A stretch of DNA of 64,000 nt from Podarcis cretensis (taxonomy: Eukaryota): assembly GCA_951804945.1 (NCBI GenBank), contig OX638149.1, forward strand, positions 51,584,001 through 51,648,000, in the 5' to 3' direction. A program made the translations under genes and the position numbers. This document shows, piece by piece, positions 1,063 through 36,792 of the stretch; position 1 is the stretch's first letter, and every line of letters starts with the position of its first letter. The notes under the pieces are model-generated. The model saw only the letters and a list, made by a program, of their open reading frames with translations. It was not told the DNA's origin and made no database searches.

Positions 1063-1236
<174 letters not shown>

Positions 1237-2303: not shown

Positions 2304-2309
2304 TTTATT
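2304..2309 (-). terminator. Candidate poly(A) signal of the THAP9-like gene
   Basis: TTTATT on + strand = AATAAA on - strand, ~630 nt past the stop at 2937. Confidence 0.35.
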
Positions 2310-2936: not shown

Positions 2937-4881
2937 TCAAATAGGCATGTACCATTCCATAAGTCCACGCGTTTGCTGAGGCCAGTCCCTGCTGGGGCCA
3001 TTTGCATTCCCTGTCTGCTGCTTATCATTAGCCACTTTCAAAGAGCTGCTACATTCATGAGTCGGTGGCATGGACAACTGCCCTTGCGCTGCCTCAAGCC
3101 ACAGTTCCAAGAAGGTTCGCACAAGCTCCTGCAGCAGAGTGACGTAATGGTTGGAAACCACAGCATTGCTCTCAAAGAGGTGGTTGCCCAGGGATGAGAA
3201 AAGACTGGGCTCCTCACTCACATCTGCCAAGATGGCCAGCTGCCACGTCAAGAACCCGCGGTGGCTGGAGTCTCCAAGGAACAAGGAAGGCAGGCCAACA
3301 ACCTGCTTTGCTCGGCGGATCACCTTCCGTACGGACTCTGCCGGGAGGTACTTTCTTCCCTTGCTCTGCACAAACAGCAGGGCACTGCCCGCAGGCACAC
3401 CCTTACAAGGGCACAAGAGGGCAGCACAGCATTCGGCGCAGGAGAGGAGGGGCAGCAGCTTCCCCAAAACAACGCAGGAAATGCAGGCGATGGCGTCTTC
3501 CTCCAACTCGGCCAGAAAGGCTGGGGCTATGCCCTGTGTCTCTCGTGGAGACCCAGTGCCCTGAGACAAGTGCCAGATCTGCCCGCGAGCCAGAGGCCAG
3601 GAAGCCTGCAACTGGAGGTTAGTTCTTCTGCGTAAGGATATGTCAAGCAGGTTTGGTGGATCGAGGCCCAGACGAGAAAGAGCTCTGTTCAAGACAACCC
3701 TGTACGCCCGCTGGAAGGTCCATGCGGGGCCAACACCTTTGTGCCCACGGGCTTGCTGTATGGCTCCCCTACACCACTCCAGAGGGTCCAGACTCCACCA
3801 ACAGGACAGCAAAGAAGCGGTGGGCTCGTCTTCTGCCTGTAGATGGGTCTGCGCCAGCCACTGAAAGCTGCGCAGGTTCACCAGGAAGCCAATGAAGCCC
3901 CATCGATGCCTGCTCAGCCCTACCAGCTCCCCGGTGGCAGTGCGGAGTTTGCGAAGCAGGTTCTCGTACTCATTGCAGAGGTTGTTGAGGGCGCTGGCAC
4001 TAGCACGGGAGAGGGTTGCCTTGAAACCTTTCCCATAGATGCTGCAGCTGCTGCACGTGTCAAAAATGGCACTCAGCAGCCCAATAAAGTGGGCGGTGGC
4101 TTCATGACCACGAAATTGAGGCAGGTCGAGCCTCGCTGCAAAATGCAAGGCCTGAACCGTGCCCTCGCTGAACAACTGCGTGGCCCCATTTCCCCACACC
4201 TGCTGTTCCTGCGGGCTGATCGCTCCGGCTTGGCATGCCTTCTGGAGCACCACTTCTTCCTGCAGAGCCCCGAGATGCAGGAGGTAATCCCAGCAGACCG
4301 CCTTGCTGCTCACCTGGAGGCTGCCGGCGGCTTGCAGCAAGCGGTGGATCAGCGTCAACAAATGACTGGGATCGAAGTAGTATGCTATTTCCAGCGTAGG
4401 AGTAGCTGGATGGAAAAATGTGGACTTGACAAAGAGGCCGTCCACCACCACTCCCAGCCGCCTGGCTGTCTCGATATTGGGAGCTGTGGCATCAGACGTC
4501 ACAGAGACCACCTGCACACCAATGTCGTACAGTTTGAGGATACAGTGGCATAGGAGCTGGGCTTGTATGTCACCTCTAAGGGTGGCGAGGAGGAAGTAGC
4601 CAACAGGCACTATCCACTGGCCTTGGAATCCAACAGCCACAAGCAGGAGGGCTTCTCCGGCTGCCGAAACCTCATCCGCATCATATTTACCAGCACCAAA
4701 GTCCATCAAACCGTGCAAATGCCCGGTGGAAGGGTCATAGTGGCTTCTCCTTTCCAAAGGGATGGAGCCCATAAGGAGAGAGCACAACTTGAAGGTTTTC
4801 TCCCCTGCTTGAGATCTCTCTGCCAGAGCATCAAAGGCTTGTTGGCTGAATCCCGGCTCGTAATCCAGGTTTGAGAGCCAC
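2937..4881 (-). CDS. THAP9-like exon 6: P-element transposase core (RNase H-like, GTP-binding insertion, C-terminal CxxC)
   Basis: Acceptor cttcttccctcatag|G. Translates (T)[37 protein letters not shown]... into the 616-aa ORF, with motifs GLMDFG, VTSDAT, YYFDPSH, ATQLFSE, SLDPLE, LSCAEC, NHYVTLL. Confidence 0.93.
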
Positions 4882-7800
4882 CTATGAGGGAAGAAGTATG
4901 GGAAAGAAAGCTAATCAGCTCCATGTTTGGTTCAAACAAAAATCTTTCTTCTACTGCCAAACCTCGGAGCCTGAGGATAGTATGTTTCTTTGCCCTCGTG
5001 CTTATGAAAAATCAAAGCATGATGTTACTTTCATAAACTATTTTAGGCCATGCTTGTGCTAGAGGGCCTGAGAATAGTTCCACGTGGGAAGGCAGAGCCT
5101 GCATCAGTTCTGCTTTATATACTCTACTTCTCTTTGCAGTATTTGAAGAAGAAAAAATCTCCCATAAACCATCAGGTGAGCTTGAAAGTCTGTTTTCTTC
5201 CCAACACACCAAATCACCCATGTGGTTTCCTTTAGGCTAACAGTGCATTTGGCACAGTTTGTGTGGGTCACTCTTAGGTCCTTATGGGCTGCTAGTGCTA
5301 TCTAATTGTTGCCTTTCTGTAAAATCTACAAGCGGAATCACAATTGACTTTCCATAGTACAGGGCACTTTGTGCTTTCCCCACGTGTACATCCACCACCA
5401 CATTATGTCCACCGCTCTCTACACCACTATTTTATGAGTCCATTTTTTAACACCTATATTTTAATTATCACTGAAAGATGTTTCTGGCTCTTGAAATTAA
5501 AGAGGCACATCATTATAGCACGGTACTTTGATTTTGTTCCTTCCAAGTGCCGGTTGTGTGGTTCTGTGATACACGCGGCTTTGCTATGTCTGCTTTTCTT
5601 GATGTTTCCATAGTCCAAAGTTGTTTTCCCCATATCTGGGCTCTCACAGAATAGCAGAGTATGTTTTCTAGTGACACATCTGATTTTAGTGTTTTAACCA
5701 ATTTTTACCATTTTGCATTATATCTCTTGTACAGCGGTACCTTGGGTTACAGACGCTTCAGGCTACAGACCCCGCTAACCCAGAAATAGTACCTCAGGTT
5801 AAGAACTTTGCTTCAGGATGAGAACAGAAATCGCGCGGTGGCAGCGGGAGACCCCATTAGCTAAAGTGGTACCTCAGGTTAAGAACAGTTTCAGGTTAAG
5901 AACGGACCTCCAGAACGAATTAAGTTCTTAATCCAAGGTACCACTGTAAACCACATAGAGACTACTGTAGTTAAGTGGCACGTGCGTCTTATGATATTTT
6001 TTCTTTGGTGCCACTGAGTGTTTGGATGGATGGGAGAAGACCAACCAATTCAGACTATCTTTCTTAGGTTGCAATCCTATATGTACGTATGTGGGACAGA
6101 GAGAGAGAGAGCATACTTTTTTTGAGAGAGCAAGACATATTTCTGAGAAAACCTTTAGAGGCTTGCAGTGATGCTTATACCTCCAAAGTCTAGTTTTATC
6201 AACTAGCACAGCTGTTTCCTTTTCCTTGTGAATTGTCCATTCCTCTGCTTCCTCTTACTAATAAATCTGATCTTACTTTAACCTCCAATGGATGAAAAGC
6301 TTAACTTTTCTCTCTCACACACACACCACACACACACGGGGCACACTACATTCAAGTCTTTTTGTTCACCTTGGCTTTCCCCTGATCAGAGTTTTGGGCA
6401 TCATTTACCTCTCTCAAATTGCTTCCATACAACAATGTGATGCCAAGCCAGTGCAGAGGTTGTACTGTCATGCTGTACTAAACAAGGGACAGCCCAGGTT
6501 TAAATTCTGACTCACTCCTGAAGCTCCCTGGATGACCTTGGGTCAGTCACCATCTCTTAGCTTAACTTGCTTCACAGGGTTGTTGTGAGGATAAAATGGG
6601 GGTTGGACATAGAACCAAGTATGCTACCTTAGGTTCCTTGGAGGAATTTGGGATATAAACATAGGGCCCAATTCAACTAACCAGTCTCACTTGTGGAAGC
6701 CTGTGCAAGGACTTCCGCTAGTGCAATGAAGGTTTCTCCCTATCCTCCCACTGCATGCCCCCTGCACCTCTGATATCAGTTCTGAGGTGGTCAGGAGAAC
6801 CCCTAGAAGAGCAAGCCTGAGCTGACAGTGTGATCTGTTTAGGGCTACACTGAATTCCTCCCACAATAACCCATGTAAAGTGATCAATCAGTTGGCTAGT
6901 ACATTACTCAAATCTTTCAAGGTTCAGTTCCAGTAACCATGAAAGATTAACCATTTCCCCCCAGCATGCCTTCAAGGTCAGAGGTTTCTTGACCAATTGC
7001 ATTTGGTGAAGTAGCAGTGCAATCCTAGCCATGTCTACAGAAGTCAGTCCTATTGAATTCCATGGGGCTTACTCAGCATAAATGGTGTTGGGCGGCAGCC
7101 TAAGCTATTGTTTACAAAAGTCCATGCATCGATAGTCTTCATGGTGCCACAGGCATCCGTCTGTCCCTTGCAGGATGTCAAACTCATTTTTATCTCAGTC
7201 ATCCAGCCCTAAATCCTGGGTTACCAACAGTCATATCCTCATGGTTTGACAATTTCCTCCTTTTGCCCAATAGTGCATTTTTAATGAAAGCTTTTCCAGG
7301 GGATCTGCAAATGTCTCCTCTGAGGAACCTGATTTTCAGATTTGGCCTCTTCTTTTTGGAACAAAGGAATTTGCCCTACTTTCCTTGAGGGATTGTTGCA
7401 TTTCCCTGGAATTTGGTTTCCGGCAACCTGAGTGAAGGCATCCTTGATACAGGGCCTCTGAGGGTGGAATTCCCTTCCCCTCCAGATAACATCTACGGCA
7501 GCTCTTAGGAGTTTTTGCAGCTTGTGAAAAACCTTTTTTTCATCTGGACCTTTGGCTGAATTTCTCTCTCTCCTCTGCACCTCAAACTTCATATTTGCCC
7601 TTGTGGATTGTTTGATGTGGAATTTACTTGTGTAGCATGAGAACAGAGGAAGCTGCCTTATACCAAGTCAGACCACTGCTTCATCTAGCTCCACAGTGTC
7701 TGCTCTGGCTGGCAGAAACCCCTCAGGATTTGGGGCAGGAGCCTTTTCCCAGCTCAGGGACTGAACCAGGGACCTTCTGCTTGCAAGTCAGATCCTCTGC

Positions 7801-10800
7801 CATTGTGGTCCTTCAGAAGATGGCCCAAGAGGTGTCATCCATGTCTGAGCAGTCAGTGGCAAATCTTACAAAGAAAGCTTGCAGACTACGTTCAGGAGCT
7901 CCTCTAGGTCTGTACGCGAGGTGTCCCGACATAATGAAGTAATGTGTTTTCAGGCATTCCCCACCCCTCTTTCTTTTCTCCCATCTTAAAAGTGTCACAC
8001 TGGAAAAAGTAGTTTCTTCAGCAAGCTAGAATGCATATATAGTGCCTATGTCTGTGCACTGTTGCTTTGCAACGTTTGCCCCTAGTTAACACAAATAAGA
8101 TACAAATAAGAAAGACATACGTGCGAAGGGTGGTGGCCTCTGGGAGCTGGAATGTCTTCTTCACAAATTCATAGGCCTTGGCTGAGAACAAATGCAGCGA
8201 GACGGCAAAGTTGCGGGTGGCAGCTGGGTAGTTCTCGCACAGGGCTCCCTCACACTGCAAAGTGAGCTGCAGGTCTGCTGAAGTAAAGAGGGTTCCTCAA
8301 GCAAGGGATGGACAGTGAGGTGAAGCTAATTTGGGGTGATGCTGCAGAGGAAGAGTCTTTAACATTGGCCTCAGCAGTGACTCTGCTGCGTTCAGACTGG
8401 GGCCTAGAAGAAGATTCAACATCCTCTATTTTCATGGGGAGGGAAACTGAGTCCAAAACCCAGGAGGACTGGGTGACCAAGAAAGCAGAGAAGGGTGTAC
8501 TTAAAGTTATTAAGGGTTTGGGGAAGTGGGGGAGATTTGTAGCAATTGCATACCGAGCACAACTGGCCAGTCGGAAATGCTGAGGAGGTAATCAAGTGAG
8601 GTAGGGAGGCTGAAACAATGGCAATATATTCCACATCTGGCAACCAATGCGCTCCTTTGGTTTCAGATAGTACATGGGTAGATGAGTCTAAAAAGCCCAG
8701 GACACAATTTTTTCATGGCCTTCTAGCATGAAACTCTGGGAATGTCTTCTCGATACTGACCAAACTAAGCCTCCTAAAGCAAAATATACATCAGGAGGCA
8801 TAGTTTGGTCAGAATCAAGTATACACTTCCAGAGTTAACACTAAATACATTATTTATGGTACATGAGCCACTAAAGGGTTGTGAAAATTACCCCACTCAT
8901 CTTAACCAAGCCTTGAAGCTGGTTTGTATCATGGCTCCCTCCTTGGAACCTTGAATGATTCTGAAACTGCACTGGTCTTATTGTAAAGGCCCCCTGGCAT
9001 GAAGAAGAGCCCCTTTGGCAAGGCTTACGGTGCTTACCGCTGAACTGGGAGCGCAGCATGTGTTCCATGTCCTTCTGGAGGAGATGCTGCTCCCGCAGGC
9101 TCTCCAGCACACTCCACAGCTCCTGCTGATAATAGGAGAGGCGGCGCTGGGCTGCGTCCTGCTCCCGTTCAGTCCCCTGCACTGGGCCAGTGGGGATCAG
9201 AGACTTGGTTCTGCTGCCCATAGCTTCACTCAGACTATACTGATGCTCCGCTTGGATGAGTTCCACCTACAGGAAGACAAAGAAGACCCGTTGCTTCATC
9301 TTTTTAATTCTCTCACCATAACTTCCATGTCCTCCTGGCACCCGATGTTTGTCCATGTGGATTTTCCACAAAGGGCTGGATTTGCTTATTCCTGAAAACT
9401 AAACTGACTTCACCTTTCTCCTTTGCCTTGATTTTCCTTTTAGCCTCTCACCACAGCCAGAGTAAACCCTTCCCAGACTCCCTTCTCCCATCAGATTCAC
9501 AATAGTTAGTGGATGTGGCCACTCTCCCTCTTTAAAGCTAACTTAGGATACCGTGATGGAAGTCAGGTTCTGCAGTTTGCTCCAGGAGCAAAGAATGTAA
9601 AGTTCTACCTTTGTACAGTAGGCTGGTTTCTACTCACACTTACACACCTCCTCCATCCAGGCCCACAAGAAGCATTATTTGAGGTCAAGGATACATTCCA
9701 GCCAGGCACAGACACTCAAGGAGGATGCAATCTAACAACAATGAGGGATGTGGCCTTGGAAGAGTGGGTGTGGCCTGGGGAGTGTCCTGAGGGCCAGAGA
9801 GGGACCTGGAGGGCCACATTTCACCCATGGGCCTGAGGTTCCCCATCTCTGCTATAGGCTTTGTCCAAGTCCCTATGGTAATATAAGCTACATGCTACAG
9901 CATTTAGTGACACACAGTTTTGTAATTTTAGATTCTGGACTTAACGGTCTCCTGGTGGGGAGGAGGGGCTCTTCATATGGTAATGTGCATTACTTTTTTC
10001 AGAATTTGGAGCCAGCTCTGCTGTGTTTAGTGTTCTCCTGCTCATTTTCTGTGTGGGGCCCTTGACCTCTGCCCCAAAGTCCTTCCCAACAGTTGCATTG
10101 CTGGCATTGGAGAAGGCACCAGCTACCCTCGCTTGTATACGTACTGCTTTGGCTTGTGCAGGAGATGAGTCAGCTGCTGGAGTAGCTTCGCTGATACTAG
10201 CCACTGGCCAACTGATGCCCATGGTTTTGACAGACTTTGATGGATGTTTCCCTTTTGTTGGTTCCTGTATTGAGAAAGAGTTCAAATGAATTAGACATAG
10301 CAATTTTACCAAAAAAAGAAAAAGGCCTGGTTGAAACAGACTGGATAAGCTAATGCTGTAGTAGAAGGCAAAAGTGAACAAAAAATAATCCCCAACAACA
10401 TTGCCATGGTATTACTGGAACTAATTAAGCATACTTCAAACATTAGAGGCTGGATCCAGGTTATGCCTTAGTCCCACACAACTCACTCATGACTATCTTA
10501 AGTTTCATCAATTTAACTGGGTGAAAAGTTAACCACTCGGTTGCAATCCTAGATACACTTATCTCAAAGTCCCACTGAAGTCAGTGGGATTTACTTATGT
10601 GTAGACATGTGTAGATTGTGGCATTATGTTTGATCCAACATACTCTCTACGTTATTTACTCATTGTCAGGCAAACCCAGATTTATTTCAAATGAAGAAAA
10701 AAGGCATTTCTGAGACCAGAATACAGATGAGGGCTTACGTATTGGAATAGCCATCCACTGCAAACCTAATTCACTGCACAATAAAGGTAACATTGTCAGA

Positions 10801-12537
10801 GACAGTTGTTCTCTTAGCCTCCTCCGTGGTGTGCTGGTTTTCCAGTGAAGTGTCTGACTTCAAACACAGAATTCCTCACCTGTGCTCTGAAATAGTATAG
10901 TCTGAAGGTTAAGACACATCCCTTTTCCTCAACACCAGTTGTCAGGCATGGGAAGGGAATGAATTCTGGACTCTTGGAACAGAGACACGCAACTCAGTGC
11001 TGCCTACACTGATTTGACAACAACTCTCCATGGTTCCAGGCAGGAGTCTTTAGCCAGCATAGAATCATAGAATCATAGAGTTGGAAGAGACCACAAGGGC
11101 CATCGAGTCCAACCCCCTGCCAAGCAGGAAACACCATCAGAGCACTCCTGACATATGGTTGTCAAGCCTCTGCTTAAAGACCTCCAAAGAAGGAGACTCC
11201 ACCACACTCCTTGGCAGAAAATTCCACTGTCGAACAGCTCTTACTGTCAGGAAGTTCTTCCTAATGTTTAGGTGGAATCTTCTTTCTTGTAGTTTGGATC
11301 CATTGCTCCATGTCCGCTTCTCTGGAGCAGCAGAAAACAACCTTTCTCCCTCCTCTATGTAACATCCTTTTATATATTTGAACATGGCTATCATATCACC
11401 CCTTAACCTCCTCTTCTCCACGCTAAACATGCCCAGCTCTCTTAGCCGTTCCTCATAAGGCATCGTTTCCAGGCCTTTGACCATTTTGGTTGCCCTCCTC
11501 TGGACACGTTCCAGTTTGTCAGTGTCCTTCTTGAACTGTGGTGCCCAGAACTGGACACAGTACTCCAGGTGAGGTCTGACCAGAGCAGAATACAGTGGCA
11601 CTATTACTTCCCTTGATCTAGATGCTATACTCCTATTGATGCAGCCCAGAATTGCATTGGCTTTTTTAGCTGCCGCGTCACACTGTTGGCTCATGTCAAG
11701 TTTGTGGTCAACCAAGACTCCTAGATCCTTTTCACATGTACTGCTCTCAAGCACTACCTCGAGATGCCAGACATTGCACCAGGGACCTTCTATATGCAAT
11801 GCAAATATTCTGCCCTTGCATCACCTTGCTTTCCCATTATCATCAGTGGGATATGGAAGGAAAACTGGTTTTGGAAGTAAAGCTTTGCAGTCTTTTCAGA
11901 CAGAGGCCTAATCTCAAGCATGCCAGTTCTTCAGGTGCAGATTATTGTGAACTGTTAGTCGTATATATCAAACTTCCTAAAACATTTCCGATGCTGTTGG
12001 GCTACAGGGTACACTAGAAAGGACTATAAAAATCTATGCACAATGACAGCTACAGAAAATACACCAAAGACAAAAGAAAAAGAAGAAAATTGCACAGATG
12101 AATATGATTCTTAATAAAATGCTTCTTAATAAAAACTGCTTGGAACATTCCCCCACCCAACTGCAGCACACCTAAGCATATTCCCCCCGCCCCCACTTTG
12201 ACGTAGCGGGAACCATATCCATCTCTGCAGCTGTCCCTTTTTTTGTTTTAGGACTATGGAAATCCTCTGCTGAGCCCACAAGCCGGTGGCAGAACAGGAA
12301 AAGTGCTGGGAGACCTTGACCTTGATCAAAAGCTGCAATGCTAAATGCACTTACACAAAGAGGGGTACAACCAATAGGCTACAATGACACTTAACCTCTG
12401 ACTAAATATGGATAGGACTGTTGGAAATGTTTGATAACAAAGTGTATAAGAAAGAAGGGAAACTCTGCAATGTGTCTTCCTCTGGGAGAGTTATCAGCTG
12501 AAGTGTGGGATACAAATTTTCAAAATAAGATAAATCT

Positions 12538-12611
<74 letters not shown>

Positions 12612-15600
12612 AAAAATAAATAACTCAAAAACTACTGCTACTTAAAGTGTCCCTGAATTTGGTGCATTTGCCTGACCAGCTTATTCCTCCTATTCCCTGA
12701 TCCTTCTGTGTCTTGTCCCTCTGTTGAAGTGTGAGCTAATTTTGGCAGGGTGCCAATATATTGAATACTGTACAACACTTAACATACATTTAAGCACTTT
12801 AATAAATAGATTTCCCCACTGAATATTGCTCCCAGTACAGCAATCCCTTCCTTGTTCCTGTCTTCCATTTCTACATACTATATTTCATGTCAGGCTATCA
12901 TCTGGACACCCCTTCTATTGCCAAAAAATGGTCTGTCCTAGCAGGTATCTGGATAAAGAAGTTCTTTTGTGGCTCCTTTTTCACTATATGACCCTTTGTC
13001 CGAGCAGCTGAATCAGAGACTCATAAAATGTGTTGGCACTTCTTCAGCTTTCCAGTTCCTGCTATTACTGAGCAAAAAGCTGATGAACCACAGTTCTTCT
13101 CTTCCATTCCCTTTACACATACACCCCCAAGGCCCACTACCAATTCCCAAACTCTCATCCTCCCTTACTGCATTTTCCTTCCTTCAACCCAAGTTTGCAA
13201 GTTTAAGTAAATGCTCTCCCTATTCTGAATCCTGCTGCTTTTGGCAATGTGCCTTTTTCATTCCCATATTCCCACTTTCAATTCACGCTCTTGCACCTAT
13301 GTTCAGTGGATTAAAGGTAAAGGTAAAGGTACCCCTGCCCGTACGGGCCAGTCTTGACAGACTCTGGGGTTGTGCGCCCATCTCACTTAAGAGGCCAGGG
13401 GCCAGCGCTGTCCGGAGACACTTCCGGGTCATGTGGCCAGCGTGACATCGCTGCTCTGGCGAGCCAGAGCCGCACACGGAAACGCCGTTTACCTTCCCGC
13501 TGGTAAGCGGTCCCTATTTATCTACTTGCACCCGGAGGTGCTTTCGAACTGCTAGGTTGGCAGGCGCTGGGACCGAGCAGTGGGAGCGCACCCCGCCGCA
13601 GGGATTCGAACCGCCGACCTTTCGATCGGCAAGTCCTAGGCGCTGAGGCTTTAACCCACAGCGCCACCTGCGTCCCTTAGGTTCAGTGGATTACATACTA
13701 GGAAATGCGTCTATCTACTCAACTGTCTTCAAAAATAAACACAGTCACCTACAGCTTATTTTTCTTCATTTAATGGATGTTCTTAGAAGCCATTGCTTCC
13801 TGAGCAGCAGGGGTGAGGAAACTTGGGCCCAAGAGCTGCACTGCCCCATGGAGAACCTTACAAGGGCCATATGCAAGCCATGGAGGAGGCCAAGGCAAAA
13901 TTGGGTGGGGCACCGGATGGGACTCTGATTTTAGTATCATAGGCTACATTTAGTATCATAGGCTACATTCACACAAGCAAAAGGCATCATCACAGACATC
14001 TTCCAGCCAGGCAACAGTTCTCAAGGAGGGCACAGAACAGGGACAATGAAGGGTGTGGCCTAGTGAGAGTCATGAGGGCCTGAAAGAAAAGCCTAGAGAG
14101 CCACATTCACTCTCAAACCTGAGGTTTCCTAACACTGCTGAATGAGAAGGGAAAAGTACCATGGAAAAGTGAGGCTGTATCAAATCTTATTCCTATGCAG
14201 AGAAGACCCACTGAAACTAACAGACATGACTAACTTGGGTTCATTAATTTTAATGGGCCTACACCAAGCAGAATTTAGTTGGAGTCAACCCTTAGAGGTT
14301 GCAGGTTTTAGACTGGACCAGAACTTGAGGTAGCACATATTTTAGGGACAAAGGAGATCTAGTAGGAGAGCCCTTGAGGTTAGTAAATGAGAACCAAGCT
14401 GCAGCTCAGAAATCCCTCAGTATGGCCCAAATTGCTGAGCAAGGCAGACAATTAAAAAGTCCAGCTAAGCTGCCAAGGTGAGCTGCGCTACAGCTTTCCT
14501 GACCAGGGAAGAGTCACTAGCAGGAAGCCTTTCCTGTCCTGTACAAGGAAGACAAACATCCCTAATGCCAGCAATTCTTACATTTCTGCTGCCTTCACAG
14601 AAAACCAGGGGATGGGATTGGAAGCATCCACCTCTGCAGCTCTGTATTGCCAGAGACTAGGAATGCTGACAGAAATTATGAGGCATTTGAGGGACCTGGG
14701 TAAGATTTAGGGACGAGAACCAGCCTTGTTGTTCCTGTACCACAACTCTTTCCCCTCTAGAACAGCATTACTTACACCAAGGAGGACAAGAGACAAGTCC
14801 CTGGGAAGTTAGTTTGCTTCTGTGAGTTGTGCAATGTCATTTCCCCACCCCTTTGGCTATAAAAAATTCAAATGACTTTCCATTCAAATGAATTTATTTC
14901 AACTTTTGGAAAGAGGCAAGGAGGGTGCACTCTCCCCAGGCGCTCATTTTTTGGACTGAGGTAGCAAATCCAGTTATTACACCAGGGCCTTCTCACAGGA
15001 TGTTGCGGTTACCTCACTAATCCAAACCAGATGTTGAGGATCCCAGAGACCATTGCTTTCTTCATGCAGTAACCCAGGCCTCTCCCAGATGTGAGCAAGA
15101 TATCAAGGCTGAGAGAAACCCCCTCAGAAAGTCCAAACAGTACCAAATAAGACGACTCCATTTAGAAAGCATTTTGCATCTGCCTATTTCTTTAAGAGGC
15201 CTGTGATTGTTCTACAAAGGCATCAAACTAAACTCAGTTCTCCTTCTGTGAGAAGGATTACAAAACAGGCCACTTTGAAGCCTGAAGCCATGTACAGCCA
15301 GGTAGGCTGCATCTGGATAAAATCACTTCTTTTGGGATGCTTCCCACCTCCACCCCCGGCCATCTTCTGTGTTTGTCATTTCCTTCTACCTTCTATGACC
15401 CAAGATGAAAGCTTTCAATTGCCATAGGTAGCGCAAGATCTTCTGCCTCAATCCACAAAGGAGATCTACCTAGCCCAGCATCTTGCTTCAAAGAGTAACA
15501 AGCCACACGCTGCTAGGGACTTGCTTCAAATCTTAATGTAACCCAGGATACCCTGCCCTCTTGGACATTTTGTTCCTGCTGTAGAATGACATTTAACAAC

Positions 15601-18600
15601 AGCTGTACATACTGAAACTTTTCGTGGACAGTGCTTGCATTATTCAGGGACTGAAGACAAGGAGGCAGGGCACTCTCCTGAAACAAACACTTGGCAGTTA
15701 AGAGCAGTGTGCCTATGTTGCAGCTTCAGAGGCACACAGATCACCCATTCTGAAAGAAAACAACAGGAAACACAGGACAGAGAGCCCCAGGGAGCTACGT
15801 TTTGGGCAGCCTATGCACTGATGAATACAACCAGCAATAAAGGGGGGGGGGAAGGCCCCACATTGCAGCCAAATCTGATGTTCCCTCTTGTGGCAAAACC
15901 AAAATGTTATTCTGTGCAGAGATTCTTTTAGATTAGATCAGCAATACTTCCAGAAAAACACCTCCCTACACCATGGAAGCATGGAAAAAATATTAGATAT
16001 GAAGCAAAAACAAAGAATTATGAAGTGGATATAAAGAGTGAAGGACACACAGTCTTTCCCCCCCTTTTTAAATGTCTTAGCAAGGACAGAAAACATGATG
16101 TTCCGATGTTGTACAGTACTAAGAAACTCTGCCAAAGCCCACCAATCAGGGACTCTAGGTGATGGTGCCCACAAATAGAGGGAGCCAGCGAACTCTTAAT
16201 GACTCAAACACACACACACACACACACAAAGAGCAGATGCCCCTTCATCACAACATGAGAAACCAGCAGTAACTCTGCTACTGGAAGCCCCAAAACATCC
16301 CAATAAGCAGGGGTTCAAGACTCCTTTTGCTGCTCTCAAACACAATTTTGTAGCCAAAACACGCAAAGGAAAGGAAGAAGATCCCACCCAACACAGCACT
16401 CATGTTGTTCCCATAGCACATAAAGAGCCGATCCCAAGTGGTGCCGGAAAGAGGCAAGTTGAGGGGCAGTTCAAGGTCCAGGCAAGAAGTGTTCCAGCCT
16501 GGTCCTGAGGTCTTTGAGCTGGAGCTACCGGAACCACACCCAGGGGTCCAGCTGAGTTTCATGAGCTGTTGTCAAAGAAAGACTCCCAAATCTGGTACTT
16601 CCCTTTTTGGACAGGTTTCCATTTGCTGTTTAAAACATTGTTGCTCCTACAAGCTCAGGGTCCATCCAGCCTTAGCTTCTGAGGCGAAACTCTCCCACTG
16701 TGCCAACTGCCCCACAGCAGCCTTGTCCAAGAGTCCCAACTTACTCTCTCCCCAGATCTAGTCAGGTCTGGGGCTTTTCTAAGTACTGGGGGCTCCAGGT
16801 CATCCTCAGATGAGGAATTCTCCAGCTAATACATAGCACAGGGGTAGGCAAACTAAGGCCCGGGGGACGGATGCAGCCCAATCGCCTTCTCAATCCAGCC
16901 TATGGACGGTCCGGGAATCAGCGTGTTTTTACATGAGTAGAGTGCGTCCTTTTATTTAAAATGCATCTCTGGGTTATTTGTGGGGCATAGGCATTCATTC
17001 ATCCCCCCCCCAAAAAAATATAGTCCGGCCCCCCACATGGTCTGAGGGACAGTGGACCGGCCCACGGCTGAAAAAGGTTGCTGACCCCTGACATAGCAGC
17101 AGTAGTGGGGGCTCTCCAGCCTGCAAGATTATTTAGGCCCACCAGGCTGCCCCATTTGGCCTGCGAAGGCATTTTGGTCAATCCAAGCCCATCTGTCCTA
17201 CACCGGATGTTATATATGTCATCAGATGTCAGGCAAACAAAGATAAAGCTGGGCCAAAAACGGTCTTGCTTGCAAAGCAGCTGATTGCAGGCACCTACAA
17301 AGTACTGTGCCCTTGGTTTGATTTCAAGCTGTGCAGGTCAAAGGAAGATGGGTCACCTGACATTATGGTGATGTTGGCTGACTGACAGGTGGGCAACCCC
17401 ATCCACCCATTAAAGTTGGCCCCTGGGTGGTGGGGAACATAAGGACCCTCAAGTCTTCTGACCAGCCAATTCCCCACTCCAGAACAGGGCATGGAGCTGA
17501 GAAGCAACCCATGCCCACTCAGCTAGTGTCACTGTAGTATCGAATTACAATGAAATTCTCTCCCACTGAATAATATTAATTATTATTATTATTAATTATT
17601 ACTTAAACCGCAGACATCCAACTGGCTTGCCCCAGACACTCTGGGCATCTTTCAACATAATATAAAAACACAGTGAGACATCAAACATTAAAAACTTCCC
17701 AATACAGGGCTGTATTTGGAAAGTTGTGTAATTGTTCATTCTTTGACATCTGATGTGGTGGCATTCTACAGGGCGAGTGCCACTACTGAGAAGGCTCTCT
17801 GCCGGATTCCGTGTAACTTCACTTCTCACAATGAGGGAACCACCAGAAGGCCCTCAGAACTGGACCTCAGAGCTGAATGATGGGGGCGAAGCTGCTCTTT
17901 TAGGTATACAGAGCCGAGGCCATGAAATCAGTGAGACCTGAAATTTCTTAAACTTGAATAGATTCTGCCTGAACTTGCAAGCAGAAATGGAAACACTGCA
18001 ACCAGGGTGTGGCGCAAACTCAGTGAAACGTTACACAAAGTGGCCATTGTCTGCCGAGCAATCATGTGTGGGTTTGCATATTGCAGGGTTCCCCACAAAG
18101 CACTCCAGTGTTAAAAAAACAAAACCCCAACCTTCTAGATGTCCGTCCCCCCGTTATGTAAACCTAGTAAGCAACCTGGAGGAAACTAAAATCTGGATCA
18201 AGTAGAGGAACTCTAAAAAAGAAATAGAAGCATAGAGATACCCTGAAATACACATAAATTGGTCAATCAACACGTTTTGAATTAATGCTCAAGGTGGTAT
18301 AGAAAAGTTGAATACAATGGAAATAATAGCTAAATATAACCTCCATTCTTCCTGTGTGCTAATATAATGTTACTGTTAAAACCTTCCTACCCTACAGCAA
18401 TGAAATATGGAGTGACACTGTGACATAAAGAGGAAATGGGGGGGGGGGGAGATGACATTTTATTACAGTGGTACCTTGGGTTACATACGCTTCAGGTTAC
18501 ATACACTTCAGGTTACACACTCCGCTAACCCAGAAATAGTGCTTCAGGGTAAGAACAGAAATCGGGCTCTGGCGGCGCAGCGGCGGCAGGAGGCCCCATT

Positions 18601-21600
18601 AGCTAAAGTGGTGTTTCAGGTTAAGAACAGTTTCAGGTTAAGAACGGACCTCCAGAACGAATTAAGTACTTAACCTGAGGTACCACTGTAGAAGCAAATC
18701 TTCCAGAAGCATAGAAATGAACAGCACAACTAGATAATGTGCAGGGGTGTGGGAAGTGTATTTACAGAACAATCCTATTCTCGTGCTATGACAAAGAGGC
18801 AGTAGATAAGTCATCACTTTGTTGGCTGAATAACTGCCACACCCAATGCAAGCTCAACCTGAAACAGTGTGGTGTGGAACACACAGCACAGAAACCCCAA
18901 AAGCAGTATAAACACAACAGACACAAACTCACTGCCCCTAGAAACATCCTAAAGCCCACCAGTTAAGGACTATGCCTGGAATGAGAGCCAGTGTGGCGTG
19001 GTAGGGAGAGTATTGGACTAGGACCTGGAAGAACGGAGTTCAAATCCCCACTCGGATATGAAGTGCACAGGGTGACTTTGCGCTAGTCACAATCTCTCAG
19101 CCTAACCTACTGTACAAGTGTGTTGCAACAGTGAAATGGAGATGGGGACAACCATGTATACTACCTTGAACTCCTGGAGGAAAGGCAGGATATAAATGTA
19201 ATAGTGAAGGATGCCCACCAATGGGGCATTTGCCTCCCACTCACCCTTCCAAGCCCCAACATCCAATTATAGGTGCTAGGAGCACAAGGGTTGCAGGAGA
19301 AGCCCTGGTTTGTTAGAAAAGTGCAGCATGACTTCTACTAAACCCTGCAGCCCCTCAACCAGCAGAGAGCAGGCCTTTTCTGTGGTAGTTCCTCATCTGT
19401 GGAATGCTCTCCCCAGAAAGGCTCACCTGCCACCATCATTACATGTTTTTAGGCGCCAAGGAAAAACATTCCTCTTTACCCAGGCCTTCAGCCATTAAAT
19501 AATCTACGGCTTGTTAAATGTGTTTGTGGCAGGGACTGTTATTGTGAATATTTTATTAGCATGCATCTATAATTATGCTCTGCATTATGTTTTTTATTAT
19601 TATGCTCCGTGAAATATGTTCTTGATGTTGTACACCACCCTGGGATCTTCTGATAAAGGGTGGTATATAAACTGAATAAATAATAATAACAATAATAATC
19701 TTCACTGTAGGATTGTGCCCTTAAGTTTCTGGTATCTTCTTACTCCAAGCACCTGACATGTCCTCCACCACACAGCGTATATTGTATAATAATATTACGG
19801 CTCCCTCCAGTGGATCATGCTGTTGATGCACTGGGAGAGGGAATCAAACACTTCTCCAAACTTTGAGGCTACTTGTTGCTGGGAACAGAGCAAGGGCAAC
19901 AACATGAATTGGTGTGAGATAATCTTCAAGTGTACCAACATAGTGTCAGCAGCACTTTTTAAAATTATGACTGCTTGCAGTCTTGTCTGCCTTGGTAAAA
20001 GAAACAGTTTTTACCCCATGAAATAAGGCAGCATGGCTTGGATCATGAGCAAGAACATCAACACACACGAAAAGAAGAGTAGCAATTACTGACAAAAACA
20101 CATGACCAGCATGTCAAAGATTAGAGCCCTGCTGGATCATATCAAAGGGCTGTTTAGACCAGTAGTGGCACACCTTTTTTCAGACCAGGCTCCCTATTTC
20201 CTTCTGAGCGCCACATGTCAGTGGTGGGTGGGGCAGCAGCAAAAGAAAGCAGAGCAATGAATGCAAATTTAACCTTTCTATACACACACATACTCATACA
20301 CCTCTCTTTATCTTCTATCCAGACAAGCAAGCCACATCATTAGAATTCCAACTAGGCAACAATATTTAGGGTGTGAAGGGTATCACCTGGGAAGAGTTCC
20401 AAGTGCCAGAGAGAGAGGTTTGGAGAACTGTGTTTGGTCACCAGGCCTGAGGTTCTCCATCCCTGACTGAGACCAACATCTTGTTTCCCAGTTACCAACC
20501 AGATGCCTCTGGGCAAAAACCACCCCCCCCCAGTAAATGGCAATTCAGAGACATCATGATTAGTTACAACTGATACTTTTAAAAGCAAAGTGGGAAATAA
20601 GATTATCTAAATCCTCATGTTAAAACTCGACTGTTAGCTGACTGTGCCTCTTCAGACTGTGGGTGGGTGATCAAATGTAGAAATGCTTTCTGATATTTTA
20701 GGTATACACTTGTCTGTGCAGAAAAATTATCAGTGGGAGGGAATGTGGACATTCATCCCTCACTTGTAGTCTTTAAGAATTTGGTGGAGCACATGGTTTC
20801 TATACAACTGGGCATCATAGGAGCCAACTCCTAGGGGCTGTGGGGGCTTTGGCCCCCATAATGTTGATGGGCATTTCTATTCAAATGGTGTGTGTGCACT
20901 GTGTCATGTGATTGATTATGCGGGGCGGGGTTTACCTGGGCCCCCACAATATTTTATTTAAATTGGCACCCCTGCTGGGCATTCAAAAGCATCACTGCCT
21001 CTGACAGCAGTGCAGACCCATGAATCCTCTTTTATAGGCACCTAAGCTGGTGGCCTGGGACGCAGGTGGCGCTGTGGGTTAAAGCCTCAGCGCCTAGGGC
21101 TTGCCGATCGAAAGGTTGGTGGTTCGAATCCCTGCGGCGGGGTGTGTTCCCGCTGCTCGGTCCCAGCGCCTGCCAACCTAGCAGTTCGAAAGCACCTCCG
21201 GGTGCAAGTAGATAAATAGGGACCGCTTACCAGCGGGAAGGTAAACGGCGTTTCCGTGTGCGGCTCTGGCTCTGGCTCTGGCCAGAGCAGCGATGTCACG
21301 CTGGCCACGTGACCCGGAAGTGTCTCCGGACAGCGCTGGCCCCTGGCCTCTTAAGTGAGATGGGCGCACAACCCCAGAGTCTGTCAAGACTGGCCCGTAC
21401 GGGCAGGGGTACCTTTACCTTTACCTTTTTAAGCTGGTGGCCACCACTGGGGGAGTGATCACAGATGGAGGCTAATATTCTGCCTTAAACCATGGTAGAG
21501 CATTGGCTACTTGGTGGCCCTGCCTGGCAGCACTCTCCTCCCTTCTCTGGTGCTAGGATACCTTGAAGGAGAACACAGAGGGGATCACGCCCGCCTTCAG

Positions 21601-22032
21601 CCTTTTCTGTCCTCCATACACCTCGAACTCATCCTGGAAGAAATGATCTGAGCAGATGCAGGCGCCTGAGCCTGGGATCCACAGCTTCCTGGAGCCTGGC
21701 TCAATGCGATTCACAGCCAGCATCCACTTCTTCCTCAGTTCATGGGCTTTGGGGAAGCTGGAGGAGGAAGAAGAGATGGCAAACTATAAATCCCACTGAC
21801 TTTCCCCACATGGGCTGATGGTGCAGGTGACGACACCGACTGACACAAAGCCCCGCCCACAACCCCACACCTGCCCCGCCCCCTCCGCTAATAGGCTTAG
21901 AACCAGCCACACTCTCCATGAGGAGGCCCCATTACGGTATTCAGATGCAGACCTGTGGAATGAGAGGCCCTTGGCCCGGTTCTCCCGCGTGTCCCGGTTG
22001 GGACAGTTAACGGCCGAGCAGGCTTTAGGCAT
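2937..22032 (-). CDS. THAP9-like P-element transposase-derived gene, ~907 aa, 6 coding exons: 22032-21953, 21757-21562, 10264-10145, 9266-9038, 8274-8121, 4881-2937
   Basis: Exons join in phase (80+196+120+229+154+1945 = 2724 nt) with GT-AG boundaries and no stops. The translation is collinear with human THAP9 as recalled, from the THAP finger to the C-terminal CxxC. Orthology to THAP9 is not established, so no symbol is given. Exon 3 is the least certain. Confidence 0.88.
5732..5946. mobile_element. Non-autonomous Tc1/mariner (Tigger-like) MITE
   Basis: TIRs CAGCGGTACCTTGG...CCAAGGTACCACTG with TA on both sides; same family at 18466 and 61073. Confidence 0.85.
6490..6660 (+). mobile_element. 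Degraded MIR/CORE-type (Squam3-like) SINE
   Basis: gatgaccttgggtcagtcaccatctcttagc...cacagggttgttgtgaggataaaatgg core; homologous to 18983-19203. Confidence 0.6.
7625..7812 (-). mobile_element. Old tRNA-derived SINE (reverse orientation)
   Basis: Reverse-complement B-box-like gggactgaaccagggaccttctgcttgcaag; related relics at ~10995-11820 (split by CR1), ~40540-40650 and ~58775-58915. Confidence 0.55.
8121..8274 (-). CDS. THAP9-like exon 5 (helical/HTH region)
   Basis: Acceptor ctctttacttcagcag|, donor CAC|gtatgt. Translates (D)[50 protein letters not shown](T), resembling THAP9 FACTLYLCSSKVYDYVRKILKLP. Confidence 0.9.
9038..9266 (-). CDS. THAP9-like exon 4 (HCF-1-binding motif EHQY plus coiled-coil)
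   Basis: Acceptor tttgtcttcctgtag|, donor GCG|gtaagc. Translates [12 protein letters not shown]...EHMLRSQFS(D), resembling THAP9 DHNYSL...LLRAQFSD. Confidence 0.88.
10145..10264 (-). CDS. THAP9-like exon 3 (low-complexity linker; donor uncertain)
   Basis: Acceptor tctttctcaatacag|GAA and best phase-0 donor GCA|gtacgt; 120 nt, phase 0/0, which fits exons 2 and 4. Translates [40 protein letters not shown]. Confidence 0.6.
11060..11750 (-). mobile_element. 5'-truncated young CR1 LINE (ORF2 C-terminus and 3' tail)
   Basis: Uninterrupted ORF ...[32 protein letters not shown]...[19 protein letters not shown]...; (ATTCTATG)n tail seen as catagaatcatagaatcataga. Confidence 0.95.
12545..12608. repeat. 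Compound (TG)n(TA)n microsatellite
   Basis: Directly visible. Confidence 0.95.
13314..13676 (-). mobile_element. Full-length Sauria SINE (Squam1)
   Basis: tRNA-like head (GGGACGCAGGTGGCGCTGTGG...GGTTCGAATCCC), (ACCTTT)n tail, 13-bp TSD GTTCAGTGGATTA at 13301-13313 and 13681-13693. Confidence 0.95.
16839..17090. mobile_element. Non-autonomous hAT element
   Basis: Ends CAGGGGTAGGCAAAC...GTTGCTGACCCCTG; perfect 8-bp TSD ACATAGCA. Confidence 0.9.
17572..17980 (-). mobile_element. L2-type LINE 3' fragment
   Basis: (TTA)n tail followed by reverse-complement L2-like 3' motifs (gagtgccactactgagaaggctctctgcc); boundaries approximate. Confidence 0.5.
18466..18688. mobile_element. Tc1/mariner (Tigger-like) MITE
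   Basis: TA-CAGTGGTACCT...AGGTACCACTG-TA; internal CAGGTTA repeats as in the 5732 copy. Confidence 0.88.
18983..19203 (+). mobile_element. MIR/CORE-type (Squam3-like) SINE
   Basis: GAGAGCCAGTGTGG head, B-box gttcaaatcc, gggtgactttg...tctctcagcctaacctac core, A-rich end. Confidence 0.7.
19340..19700 (+). mobile_element. L2-type LINE 3' end
   Basis: Translates ...[14 protein letters not shown]...[10 protein letters not shown] (typical L2 ORF2 C-terminus); terminal hairpin caccctggg...aagggtgg; (AAT)n tail. Confidence 0.75.
20816..20974. mobile_element. Short hAT-like MITE
   Basis: Imperfect TIRs CATAGGAGCCAA / TTGGCACCCCTG; perfect 8-bp TSD CTGGGCAT (20808-20815, 20975-20982). Confidence 0.8.
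21057..21429 (+). mobile_element. Full-length Sauria SINE
   Basis: Head GGGACGCAGGTGGCGC, tail (ACCTTT)3, 13-bp TSD TAAGCTGGTGGCC. Confidence 0.95.
21562..21757 (-). CDS. THAP9-like exon 2 (THAP domain C-terminal part)
   Basis: Acceptor cttcttcctcctccag|. Translates (S)[65 protein letters not shown] with the invariant P, W, CxxHF and AVPTIF-like box. Absent from the ORF track. Confidence 0.93.
21953..22032 (-). CDS. THAP9-like exon 1 (THAP domain N-terminus)
   Basis: Translates [26 protein letters not shown](S) with the CxxxxC zinc ligands; 80 nt; donor CAG|gtctgc. Confidence 0.92.
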
Positions 22033-22234
22033 CGTCTCCGACTCCACGGCGAAAAGCCCCAATCCCGGCTCCCGCCAAGCGCGGTTACTTTGCCTCGAGC
22101 GTCATGGCGGCAACGTCCGCGGCGCACTCTGAACTGACCCCGGAGGCGACCCGTCGGAGGGAAACACCCCGCGCGCGGATTGGTCCCCGCGGCGACCTTT
22201 TGCCGGCCGCGGTGGGTGCTGGGAAAAAGAAAAC

Positions 22235-36792
<14,558 letters not shown>

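Follow-up and report, generated by a model that had tools for sequence, protein, structure and literature searches.

How many genes derived from P-element transposases do amniotes keep, and what is the one that lies between an SH3-ending gene and an ArfGap gene in Podarcis cretensis? We address this question for a window of 64,000 nucleotides (nt) from that species (GenBank assembly GCA_951804945.1, contig OX638149.1, positions 51,584,001 to 51,648,000 of the forward strand), in which positions 2,937 to 22,032 hold an intact transposase-like gene; all coordinates below refer to this window. In amniotes, THAP9 is taken to be the only gene derived from a P-element transposase, and what it does in the cell is not known. 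We find that the locus is very probably the lacertid copy of a different gene, here called THAP9-B, which is an old single-locus host gene and the sister paralogue of the domesticated P-transposase gene THAP9. Proteins of the window type are referred to as clade B, and canonical THAP9 proteins as clade A.

The gene has six exons on the minus strand, starting with an ATG at 22032 and ending with a stop codon at 2937-2939, and every intron is bounded by GT and AG. Exons were read directly from the sequence and located by tblastn with P0001, a protein of 908 amino acids (aa) from Podarcis raffonei, as query. Database searches were run per exon, with P0001 as the full-length stand-in. The exons are as follows.

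22032-21953, minus strand: exon 1, 80 nt; start codon and first 26 2/3 codons, with zinc ligands C5 and C10; donor GT at 21952-21951.
21757-21562, minus strand: exon 2, 196 nt; rest of the THAP domain, with C62, H65 and the GVIPSVF motif; acceptor AG at 21759-21758, donor GT at 21561-21560.
10264-10145, minus strand: exon 3, 120 nt; linker of 40 codons, including a 13-residue stretch missing from clade A.
9266-9038, minus strand: exon 4, 229 nt; helical linker (EHQYSL ... LLQKD ... QFS) at the position of the THAP9 coiled coil.
8277-8121, minus strand: exon 5, 157 nt; helix-turn-helix (HTH) domain of P-element transposases; alternative start at 8274.
4881-2940, minus strand: exon 6, 1942 nt, followed by the stop codon at 2939-2937; RNase H-like core, GTP-binding insertion domain and THAP9 C-terminal domain.

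Exon lengths total 2724 nt, or 908 codons. No exon contains an in-frame stop, the reading frame of exon 6 alone spans 647 codons, and the window sequence contains no N. The initial annotation of this DNA had described a six-exon, in-phase, stop-free protein of about 907 aa, and this model holds: the product is 908 aa long, or 907 aa when the second exon 5 acceptor is used. The junction residues (a slash marks the intron) are SFH/, SFK/, AKA/VEL, QFS/(A)D and LRT/W; four of these had been recognised before (SFH/, FK/, QFS/D and LRT/W), to which we add AKA/VEL. The exon 5 acceptor (8271-8280) is a NAGNAG tandem, CAG/CAG, and its second site drops one Ala. A one-Ala difference of this kind separates the X1/X2 isoforms annotated in Podarcis raffonei, P. 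muralis and Zootoca, as well as two isoforms from Varanus. Because one-Ala isoforms occur in Podarcis, Zootoca and Varanus, the tandem site seems to be conserved across squamates.

The encoded protein has the architecture of the P-element superfamily. Pfam recognises a THAP domain in exon 2 (E 9.2e-10), the Tnp_P_element HTH domain in exon 5 (E 2.9e-14), and the TNP-like RNaseH_N, TNP-like GBD and THAP9_C families in exon 6 (PF21787, PF21788 and PF22824); exons 3 and 4 matched no Pfam family. PF12017, PF21787, PF21788 and PF22824 are therefore present in the superfamily order of HTH domain, split RNase H-like core and C-terminal domain. Within the THAP finger, 13 clade B proteins show no variation at the zinc ligands C5, C10, C62 and H65 or at P29, W38 and P86. 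When 30 relatives were combined into a profile, it matched the Drosophila P transposase structure 6p5a with an E value of 8e-56 over chain residues 94-562. The AlphaFold model of exon 6 has a mean predicted local distance difference test score of 75.7, and its best match among solved structures is again 6p5a (chain A; Foldseek E 1.9e-15, target-normalised template modelling score 0.67), followed by RAG1, Hermes and Transib. The earlier description of a full C2CH THAP finger and a transposase core is thus confirmed by Pfam, by the 6p5a profile and by the fold matches.

Relatives of this protein fall into two clades. The closest proteins are lacertid entries named 'DNA transposase THAP9', with 91-96% identity; P0001 shares 95.8% of its residues with the window protein in exon 6 and all of them in exon 2 (100%, residues 27-92 of P0001). 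A single query brought up 19 close relatives, each of which belongs to a squamate, turtle or crocodilian or comes from an unnamed assembly. With 13 of them combined in a profile, the search recovered the same 19 and none from birds, mammals or amphibians. An exhaustive HMMER search showed a steep drop in score, from 812 bits for the Alligator B protein to 274 for gecko THAP9 and 264 for tinamou THAP9 (33-34% identity). Below THAP9, other relatives scored at most 196 bits and were mostly long open reading frames (ORFs) on short contigs that resemble transposon copies. Clade B comprises squamates, turtles and crocodilians only, and clade A comprises mammals, birds, turtles, crocodilians, a gecko and a cordylid. 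A query with the gecko protein returned canonical THAP9 from mammals and many birds, from turtles and crocodilians, and from one further squamate, Hemicordylus. Note that P0198, a 903-aa protein from public read assemblies that might be human, was excluded from all comparisons.

Both types occur together in Chelonia mydas, Chelydra serpentina, Lepidochelys olivacea, L. kempii, Eretmochelys imbricata and Crocodylus porosus. In Chelonia mydas, the B gene ('uncharacterized LOC102930032') lies on a 134.4-Mb contig and the A gene, THAP9, on a 142.3-Mb contig. Clade B genes are already annotated, and NCBI lists those of lacertids, anoles, varanids and pythons as 'THAP9'. Lacertids, anoles, varanids and snakes are not represented by any canonical THAP9 protein among the relatives listed for gecko THAP9, and it is because none is recorded in these groups that annotation pipelines give THAP9-B the name THAP9. 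The initial annotation had the gene absent from or lost in mammals. For annotated proteins this is correct, and it extends to birds, as clade B is absent from the annotated bird and mammal proteins in predicted-protein databases.

Four B-type exon 6 ORFs from public read assemblies (P0015, P0008, P0010 and P0011) branch at the base of squamate clade B, outside the group of lacertids, amphisbaenians, snakes, anguimorphs and iguanians. They are probably from geckos, skinks or similar lineages that lack an annotated B protein. Given this position below the lacertid, snake, anguimorph and iguanian group, clade B is probably present in early-branching squamates too. A strict pattern in which each squamate carries either A or B is unsupported, given these basal ORFs.

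Phylogenetic trees were built at three scales, with 62 rows (quick search), 174 rows (FastTree) and 26 rows (careful search). Clade A, clade B and the grouping of A with B against all other relatives were recovered in all three trees, each with 100/100 support in the 26-row tree. The A and B grouping is exclusive against about 140 other relatives, and within both clades the branching matches the species tree. An approximately unbiased (AU) test on the 26 rows rejected the union of B with sauropsid A (log-likelihood difference 37, p = 0.0001), which places the A/B split before the divergence of mammals and sauropsids. The window protein is therefore not an orthologue of canonical THAP9: it is sister to clade A and not nested within it, and turtles and a crocodile carry both types per genome. 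It falls outside the THAP9 orthologue clade on these trees, and the main inference of that annotation, a THAP9 paralogue as opposed to a relocated THAP9, is upheld by the sister clades, by co-occurrence in single species and by the AU test. Its description of the protein as strongly diverged yet collinear with THAP9 is also accurate, as domain order is the same at an identity of 33-38%.

Three other explanations of the locus have to be weighed against the duplication of a THAP9 ancestor. In the first of these, the true orthologue of human THAP9 moved in squamates and then diverged fast, which would agree with the NCBI name and with the lack of a listed canonical THAP9 in lacertids, anoles, varanids and snakes. 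The initial annotation had kept this relocation as its alternative. It is, however, refuted by the presence of A and B within single species (turtles and Crocodylus porosus); furthermore, B lies outside A, and the window protein is 61% identical to Alligator B versus 34% to gecko A. We therefore consider relocation extremely improbable. A second intron-bearing P element that was immobilised independently between the SH3 and ArfGap genes in a sauropsid or amniote ancestor deserves somewhat more attention, although we still judge it improbable. In its favour, the identity between A and B (33-38%) is barely above that between A and unnamed outgroup relatives (26-36%), the stem of clade B is long, and junction 3 (AKA/VEL), which adjoins the 13-residue B-specific insert, has no clade A counterpart shown; this junction may be specific to B. 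The exclusive grouping of A and B against about 140 other relatives (100/100) counts against a second domestication, as does the apparent nature of the nearest outgroup sequences, which are long single ORFs on 3-kb contigs and so suggest intronless elements. The shared introns are a further argument. Exon borders of clade A, taken from the break points of annotated isoforms, coincide with those of clade B at three places: isoforms X1/X2 of Chelonoidis break after residue 27, in the same alignment column as B junction 1 (SFH/); proteins P0340/P0248 of Crocodylus porosus break at residue 96/97, in the same column as B junction 2 (FK/); and the alternative 5' part of Alligator sinensis X1 joins at QFS/DLPW, which is B junction 4. 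These three coincident junctions favour duplication of an intron-bearing, already domesticated gene over independent domestication. The claim that introns sit at THAP9-equivalent positions is accordingly supported for three of the four named, SFH/, FK/ and QFS/D, which are the ones marked by clade A isoform break points.

On the last explanation, the open frame in this species would be a matter of chance, and the gene would be either a transposase relic that is decaying or free of constraint, or an element that can still move. Divergence in exon 6 is fairly high among lacertid genera, with 4-9% of the protein differing (P0001 and P0342-P0349 against the window), and the branch of the cobra copy, which is only partial, is very long. 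Against this stand the open frame of 908 codons and the intact orthologues that track the species tree, with full-length open B proteins recorded for over 20 squamate, turtle and crocodilian species. When species pairs are matched, B proves better conserved than canonical THAP9: identity is 74% for B versus 66% for A between turtles and crocodiles, 66% versus 56% between squamates and turtles, and 64% versus 54% between squamates and crocodiles. Six lacertid sequences vary at 8.1% of the sites in the confident blocks of the AlphaFold model versus 25.9% in the low-confidence blocks (Fisher p = 8.5e-7), and recent change therefore avoids the folded core. There is also no sign of transposon ends, and younger repeats lie within the introns. 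Of 126 inverted pairs found in 1200-23500, the 25 longest include none that brackets the gene with one arm at positions lower than 2937 and its partner within the 202 nt beyond 22032, in agreement with the earlier report of no flanking terminal inverted repeats. The gene is a single locus within the window (tblastn), and the isoforms of each annotated species that we checked sit on contigs of one size. For clade B as a whole, a relic or mobile element is contradicted, and we give it hardly any weight for this locus.

The lacertid changes in exon 6 cluster in low-confidence stretches, namely residues 405-452 and the last 48 residues. Outside lacertids, the B protein of the cobra Ophiophagus hannah (P0019, with P0109) is partial, and its branch is about 10 times those of boas and pythons. 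Because this fragment sits on such a long branch, relaxed constraint or decay of B is suggested in at least some advanced snakes.

Conservation of the active site differs between the two clades. The profile alignment to 6p5a served to locate equivalent residues, which were then tallied in 25 B and 121 A proteins; positions are given as in Drosophila P transposase and in human THAP9. At D230/K282, clade B has Gly in all 21 full-length proteins except one with Ala (a low-quality model from Lacerta agilis), and clade A has Lys in mammals, Gln in birds and Glu or Asp in turtles and crocodilians. At D303/D374, Asp is present in all B proteins (in the window, exon 6 residue D130, with its codon at 4491-4493). 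In clade A, all 30 mammals have Asp at this position, 76 of 78 birds have Gly, and every turtle and crocodilian has Ala; of the two squamates, one has Ala and the other a gap. At E531/E613, B proteins have Glu, with Gln in both crocodilian B proteins, and A proteins have Glu in 76/78 birds and in all other species. Clade B thus keeps the equivalents of human THAP9 D304, D374, D414, D519 and E613. Also conserved are the DADE and D(2)H motifs and the equivalents of D444 and D528, with the exception of two B ORFs from unnamed assemblies that carry Asn at the second Asp of DADE.

The full Drosophila-type DDE triad (D230, D303, E531) is incomplete in clade B, in which Gly takes the place of D230. 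This absence would lower confidence in catalysis but not in THAP9-type membership, because human THAP9 also lacks an acidic residue at the D230 position (K282, PMC10824691) and is nevertheless reported to be active. Birds have A only, with Gly at D374, and crocodilians have Ala at that position in A and Gln at E613 in B; catalysis has therefore not been preserved in every lineage. From residue conservation, a DNA-binding role without cleavage appears at least as likely as a nuclease role. D374 of THAP9 has been described as conserved only in mammals (PMC10824691). We add that the reptile sister gene retains the Asp equivalent to D374.

Several points weigh against an ancient, maintained paralogue. 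The stem branch of B is 0.93 changes per site long, and long-branch attraction may place B outside crown A; the AU test shares this model weakness with the tree. The tree was built without named THAP9 from amphibians, lampreys or fish, which dates the split only as older than crown amniotes. A check of 150 representatives for amphibian-like sequences, by similarity to clade A, brought out none, and the nearest non-amniote relatives are almost all from unnamed assemblies, plus a limpet and a tick. The absences in birds, in mammals and in the window's own genome were judged from predicted-protein databases only. Finally, the catalytic set is not kept everywhere, given the Gln at E531/E613 in crocodilian B and the Gly at D230.

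The neighbours of the gene and its likely regulatory features are as follows.

1075-1236, plus strand: last coding exon of the SH3-ending gene, with the SH3 domain at 1075-1233 (Pfam SH3_9, E 3.9e-9), convergent with exon 6.
2304-2309, minus strand: candidate polyadenylation signal AATAAA from a pattern scan, 628 nt past the stop codon and putatively used by the gene.
21800-22600: CpG island with both start codons inside; GC 0.65-0.67, CpG observed/expected 0.81-1.04 versus 0.13-0.5 in the flanks.
22235-22823, plus strand: first two coding exons of the ArfGap gene (Pfam ArfGap, E 6.3e-20 for 22704-22823).

The initial annotation had placed the gene between PACSIN3 and ARFGAP2. Pfam confirms that an SH3-ending gene and an ArfGap gene flank it, and the names themselves are tentative and go by sequence motifs: the two neighbours are probably PACSIN3 and ARFGAP2 rather than PACSIN2 and ARFGAP3, which are likewise neighbours in human. 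A protein-atlas search with the SH3 exon did not separate PACSIN3 from other SH3 proteins. For human, the initial annotation had PACSIN3 and ARFGAP2 next to each other with no gene between them, and THAP9 beside SEC31A on chromosome 4. The start codons of the transposase gene (22032, minus) and of the ArfGap gene (22235, plus) are 202 nt apart, and the CpG island that holds both is a candidate bidirectional promoter common to THAP9-B and the ArfGap gene.

Intron 2, of 11.3 kb, contains several repeats. An inverted pair of about 370 nt (13313-13676 and 21057-21428, 97-99% complementary) resembles a young family of short interspersed elements and could pair within the pre-mRNA. ARAGORN found no tRNA-like sequence in the introns, including these inverted repeats. 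A minus-strand ORF of 220 aa (11137-11799) has no Pfam match, and we take it to resemble the C-terminal part of ORF2 of a CR1-type long interspersed element. Microsatellites of (GT)n and (AC)n type at 12534-12575 and 16202-16238 are the source of several of the reported inverted-repeat pairs.

On this evidence, the most likely origin of THAP9-B is a duplication at the DNA level, earlier than the divergence of mammals from sauropsids, of a THAP9 ancestor that was already immobilised and carried introns. THAP9-B would then have been kept in squamates, turtles and crocodilians and apparently lost in mammals and birds, a loss that we read from the lack of an annotated copy. The protein retains the full layout of a P transposase: first a C2CH THAP finger, the module that recognises specific DNA sequences, then a helical linker and the HTH domain, and finally an RNase H-like core, interrupted by the GTP-binding insertion domain, with the C-terminal domain behind it. 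Transcription would start from the bidirectional promoter in the CpG island, and the THAP finger would bind DNA. On the evidence of its conserved residues, the protein may still nick or cut DNA, as human THAP9 does. Self-mobilisation should be impossible because no transposon ends remain.

A more tentative proposal, which we consider doubtful, is that in squamates and turtles THAP9-B, and not the gene named THAP9, might be the copy with the tested catalytic set (Asp/Asp/Glu) intact, the canonical gene having lost the Asp equivalent to D374 throughout sauropsids, and would then act as the functional counterpart of mammalian THAP9. If this is true, one catalytic and one non-catalytic copy per genome would form a natural paired system for the study of domesticated P transposase function. 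That most squamates lost A, and birds and mammals B, would then be a mark of partial redundancy.

The existence of a paralogue older than crown amniotes alters the interpretation of reptile 'THAP9' data. Under the name THAP9, NCBI lists A for turtles and birds and B for most squamates, and name-based orthologue sets, such as the 216-species set of PMC10824691, therefore probably mix paralogues. The puzzle of D374, with its mammal-only conservation (PMC10824691), is sharpened by a reptile sister gene that retains the residue. Several contrasts are now on offer, between A and B in one genome and among lineages, as birds have A only, most squamates apparently B only, and turtles both. These findings should be of moderate to high relevance for studies of transposase domestication.

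Literature searches returned no paper that separates two THAP9 paralogues and none that links THAP9 with ARFGAP2 or PACSIN3. Human and other vertebrate THAP9 is described as a domesticated P-element transposase (Majumdar 2013 as cited in PMC5753468; Sharma 2021, PMC8230255). THAP9-B resembles canonical THAP9 in its domain order over about 900 aa, in at least three exon junctions and in its lack of transposon ends. Both also have a non-acidic residue at the D230 position, which is Lys282 in human (PMC10824691) and Gly in THAP9-B. However, the two share only 33-38% identity, and THAP9-B forms a separate sister clade, sits at another locus next to the SH3-ending and ArfGap genes, carries one more intron and a linker insert of 13 residues, and has no mammal or bird copy on record. 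Among sauropsids, the Asp equivalent to D374 is kept by THAP9-B and not by the canonical gene.

Zebrafish zfTHAP9/Pdre2 is another vertebrate transposase of the P superfamily that combines a THAP with an RNase H-like domain. The 13-bp terminal inverted repeats of Pdre2 are accompanied by subterminal repeats and by target-site duplications of 8 bp, and about 50 copies are related to it (PMC10983969). In contrast, the flanks of the window gene show none of these features, and its coding exons are spread across 19 kb of intron-rich host DNA. With Drosophila P transposase (6p5a/6pe2), THAP9-B shares the fold and conserves the equivalents of D303, D339/H342 (the D(2)H motif), D444, D528 and E531. 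It differs in having about 19% identity and a Gly at the D230 equivalent, and in being a host gene and not a mobile element. THAP9-B is an unrecognised member of the THAP9/P-transposase family and not a new kind of system.

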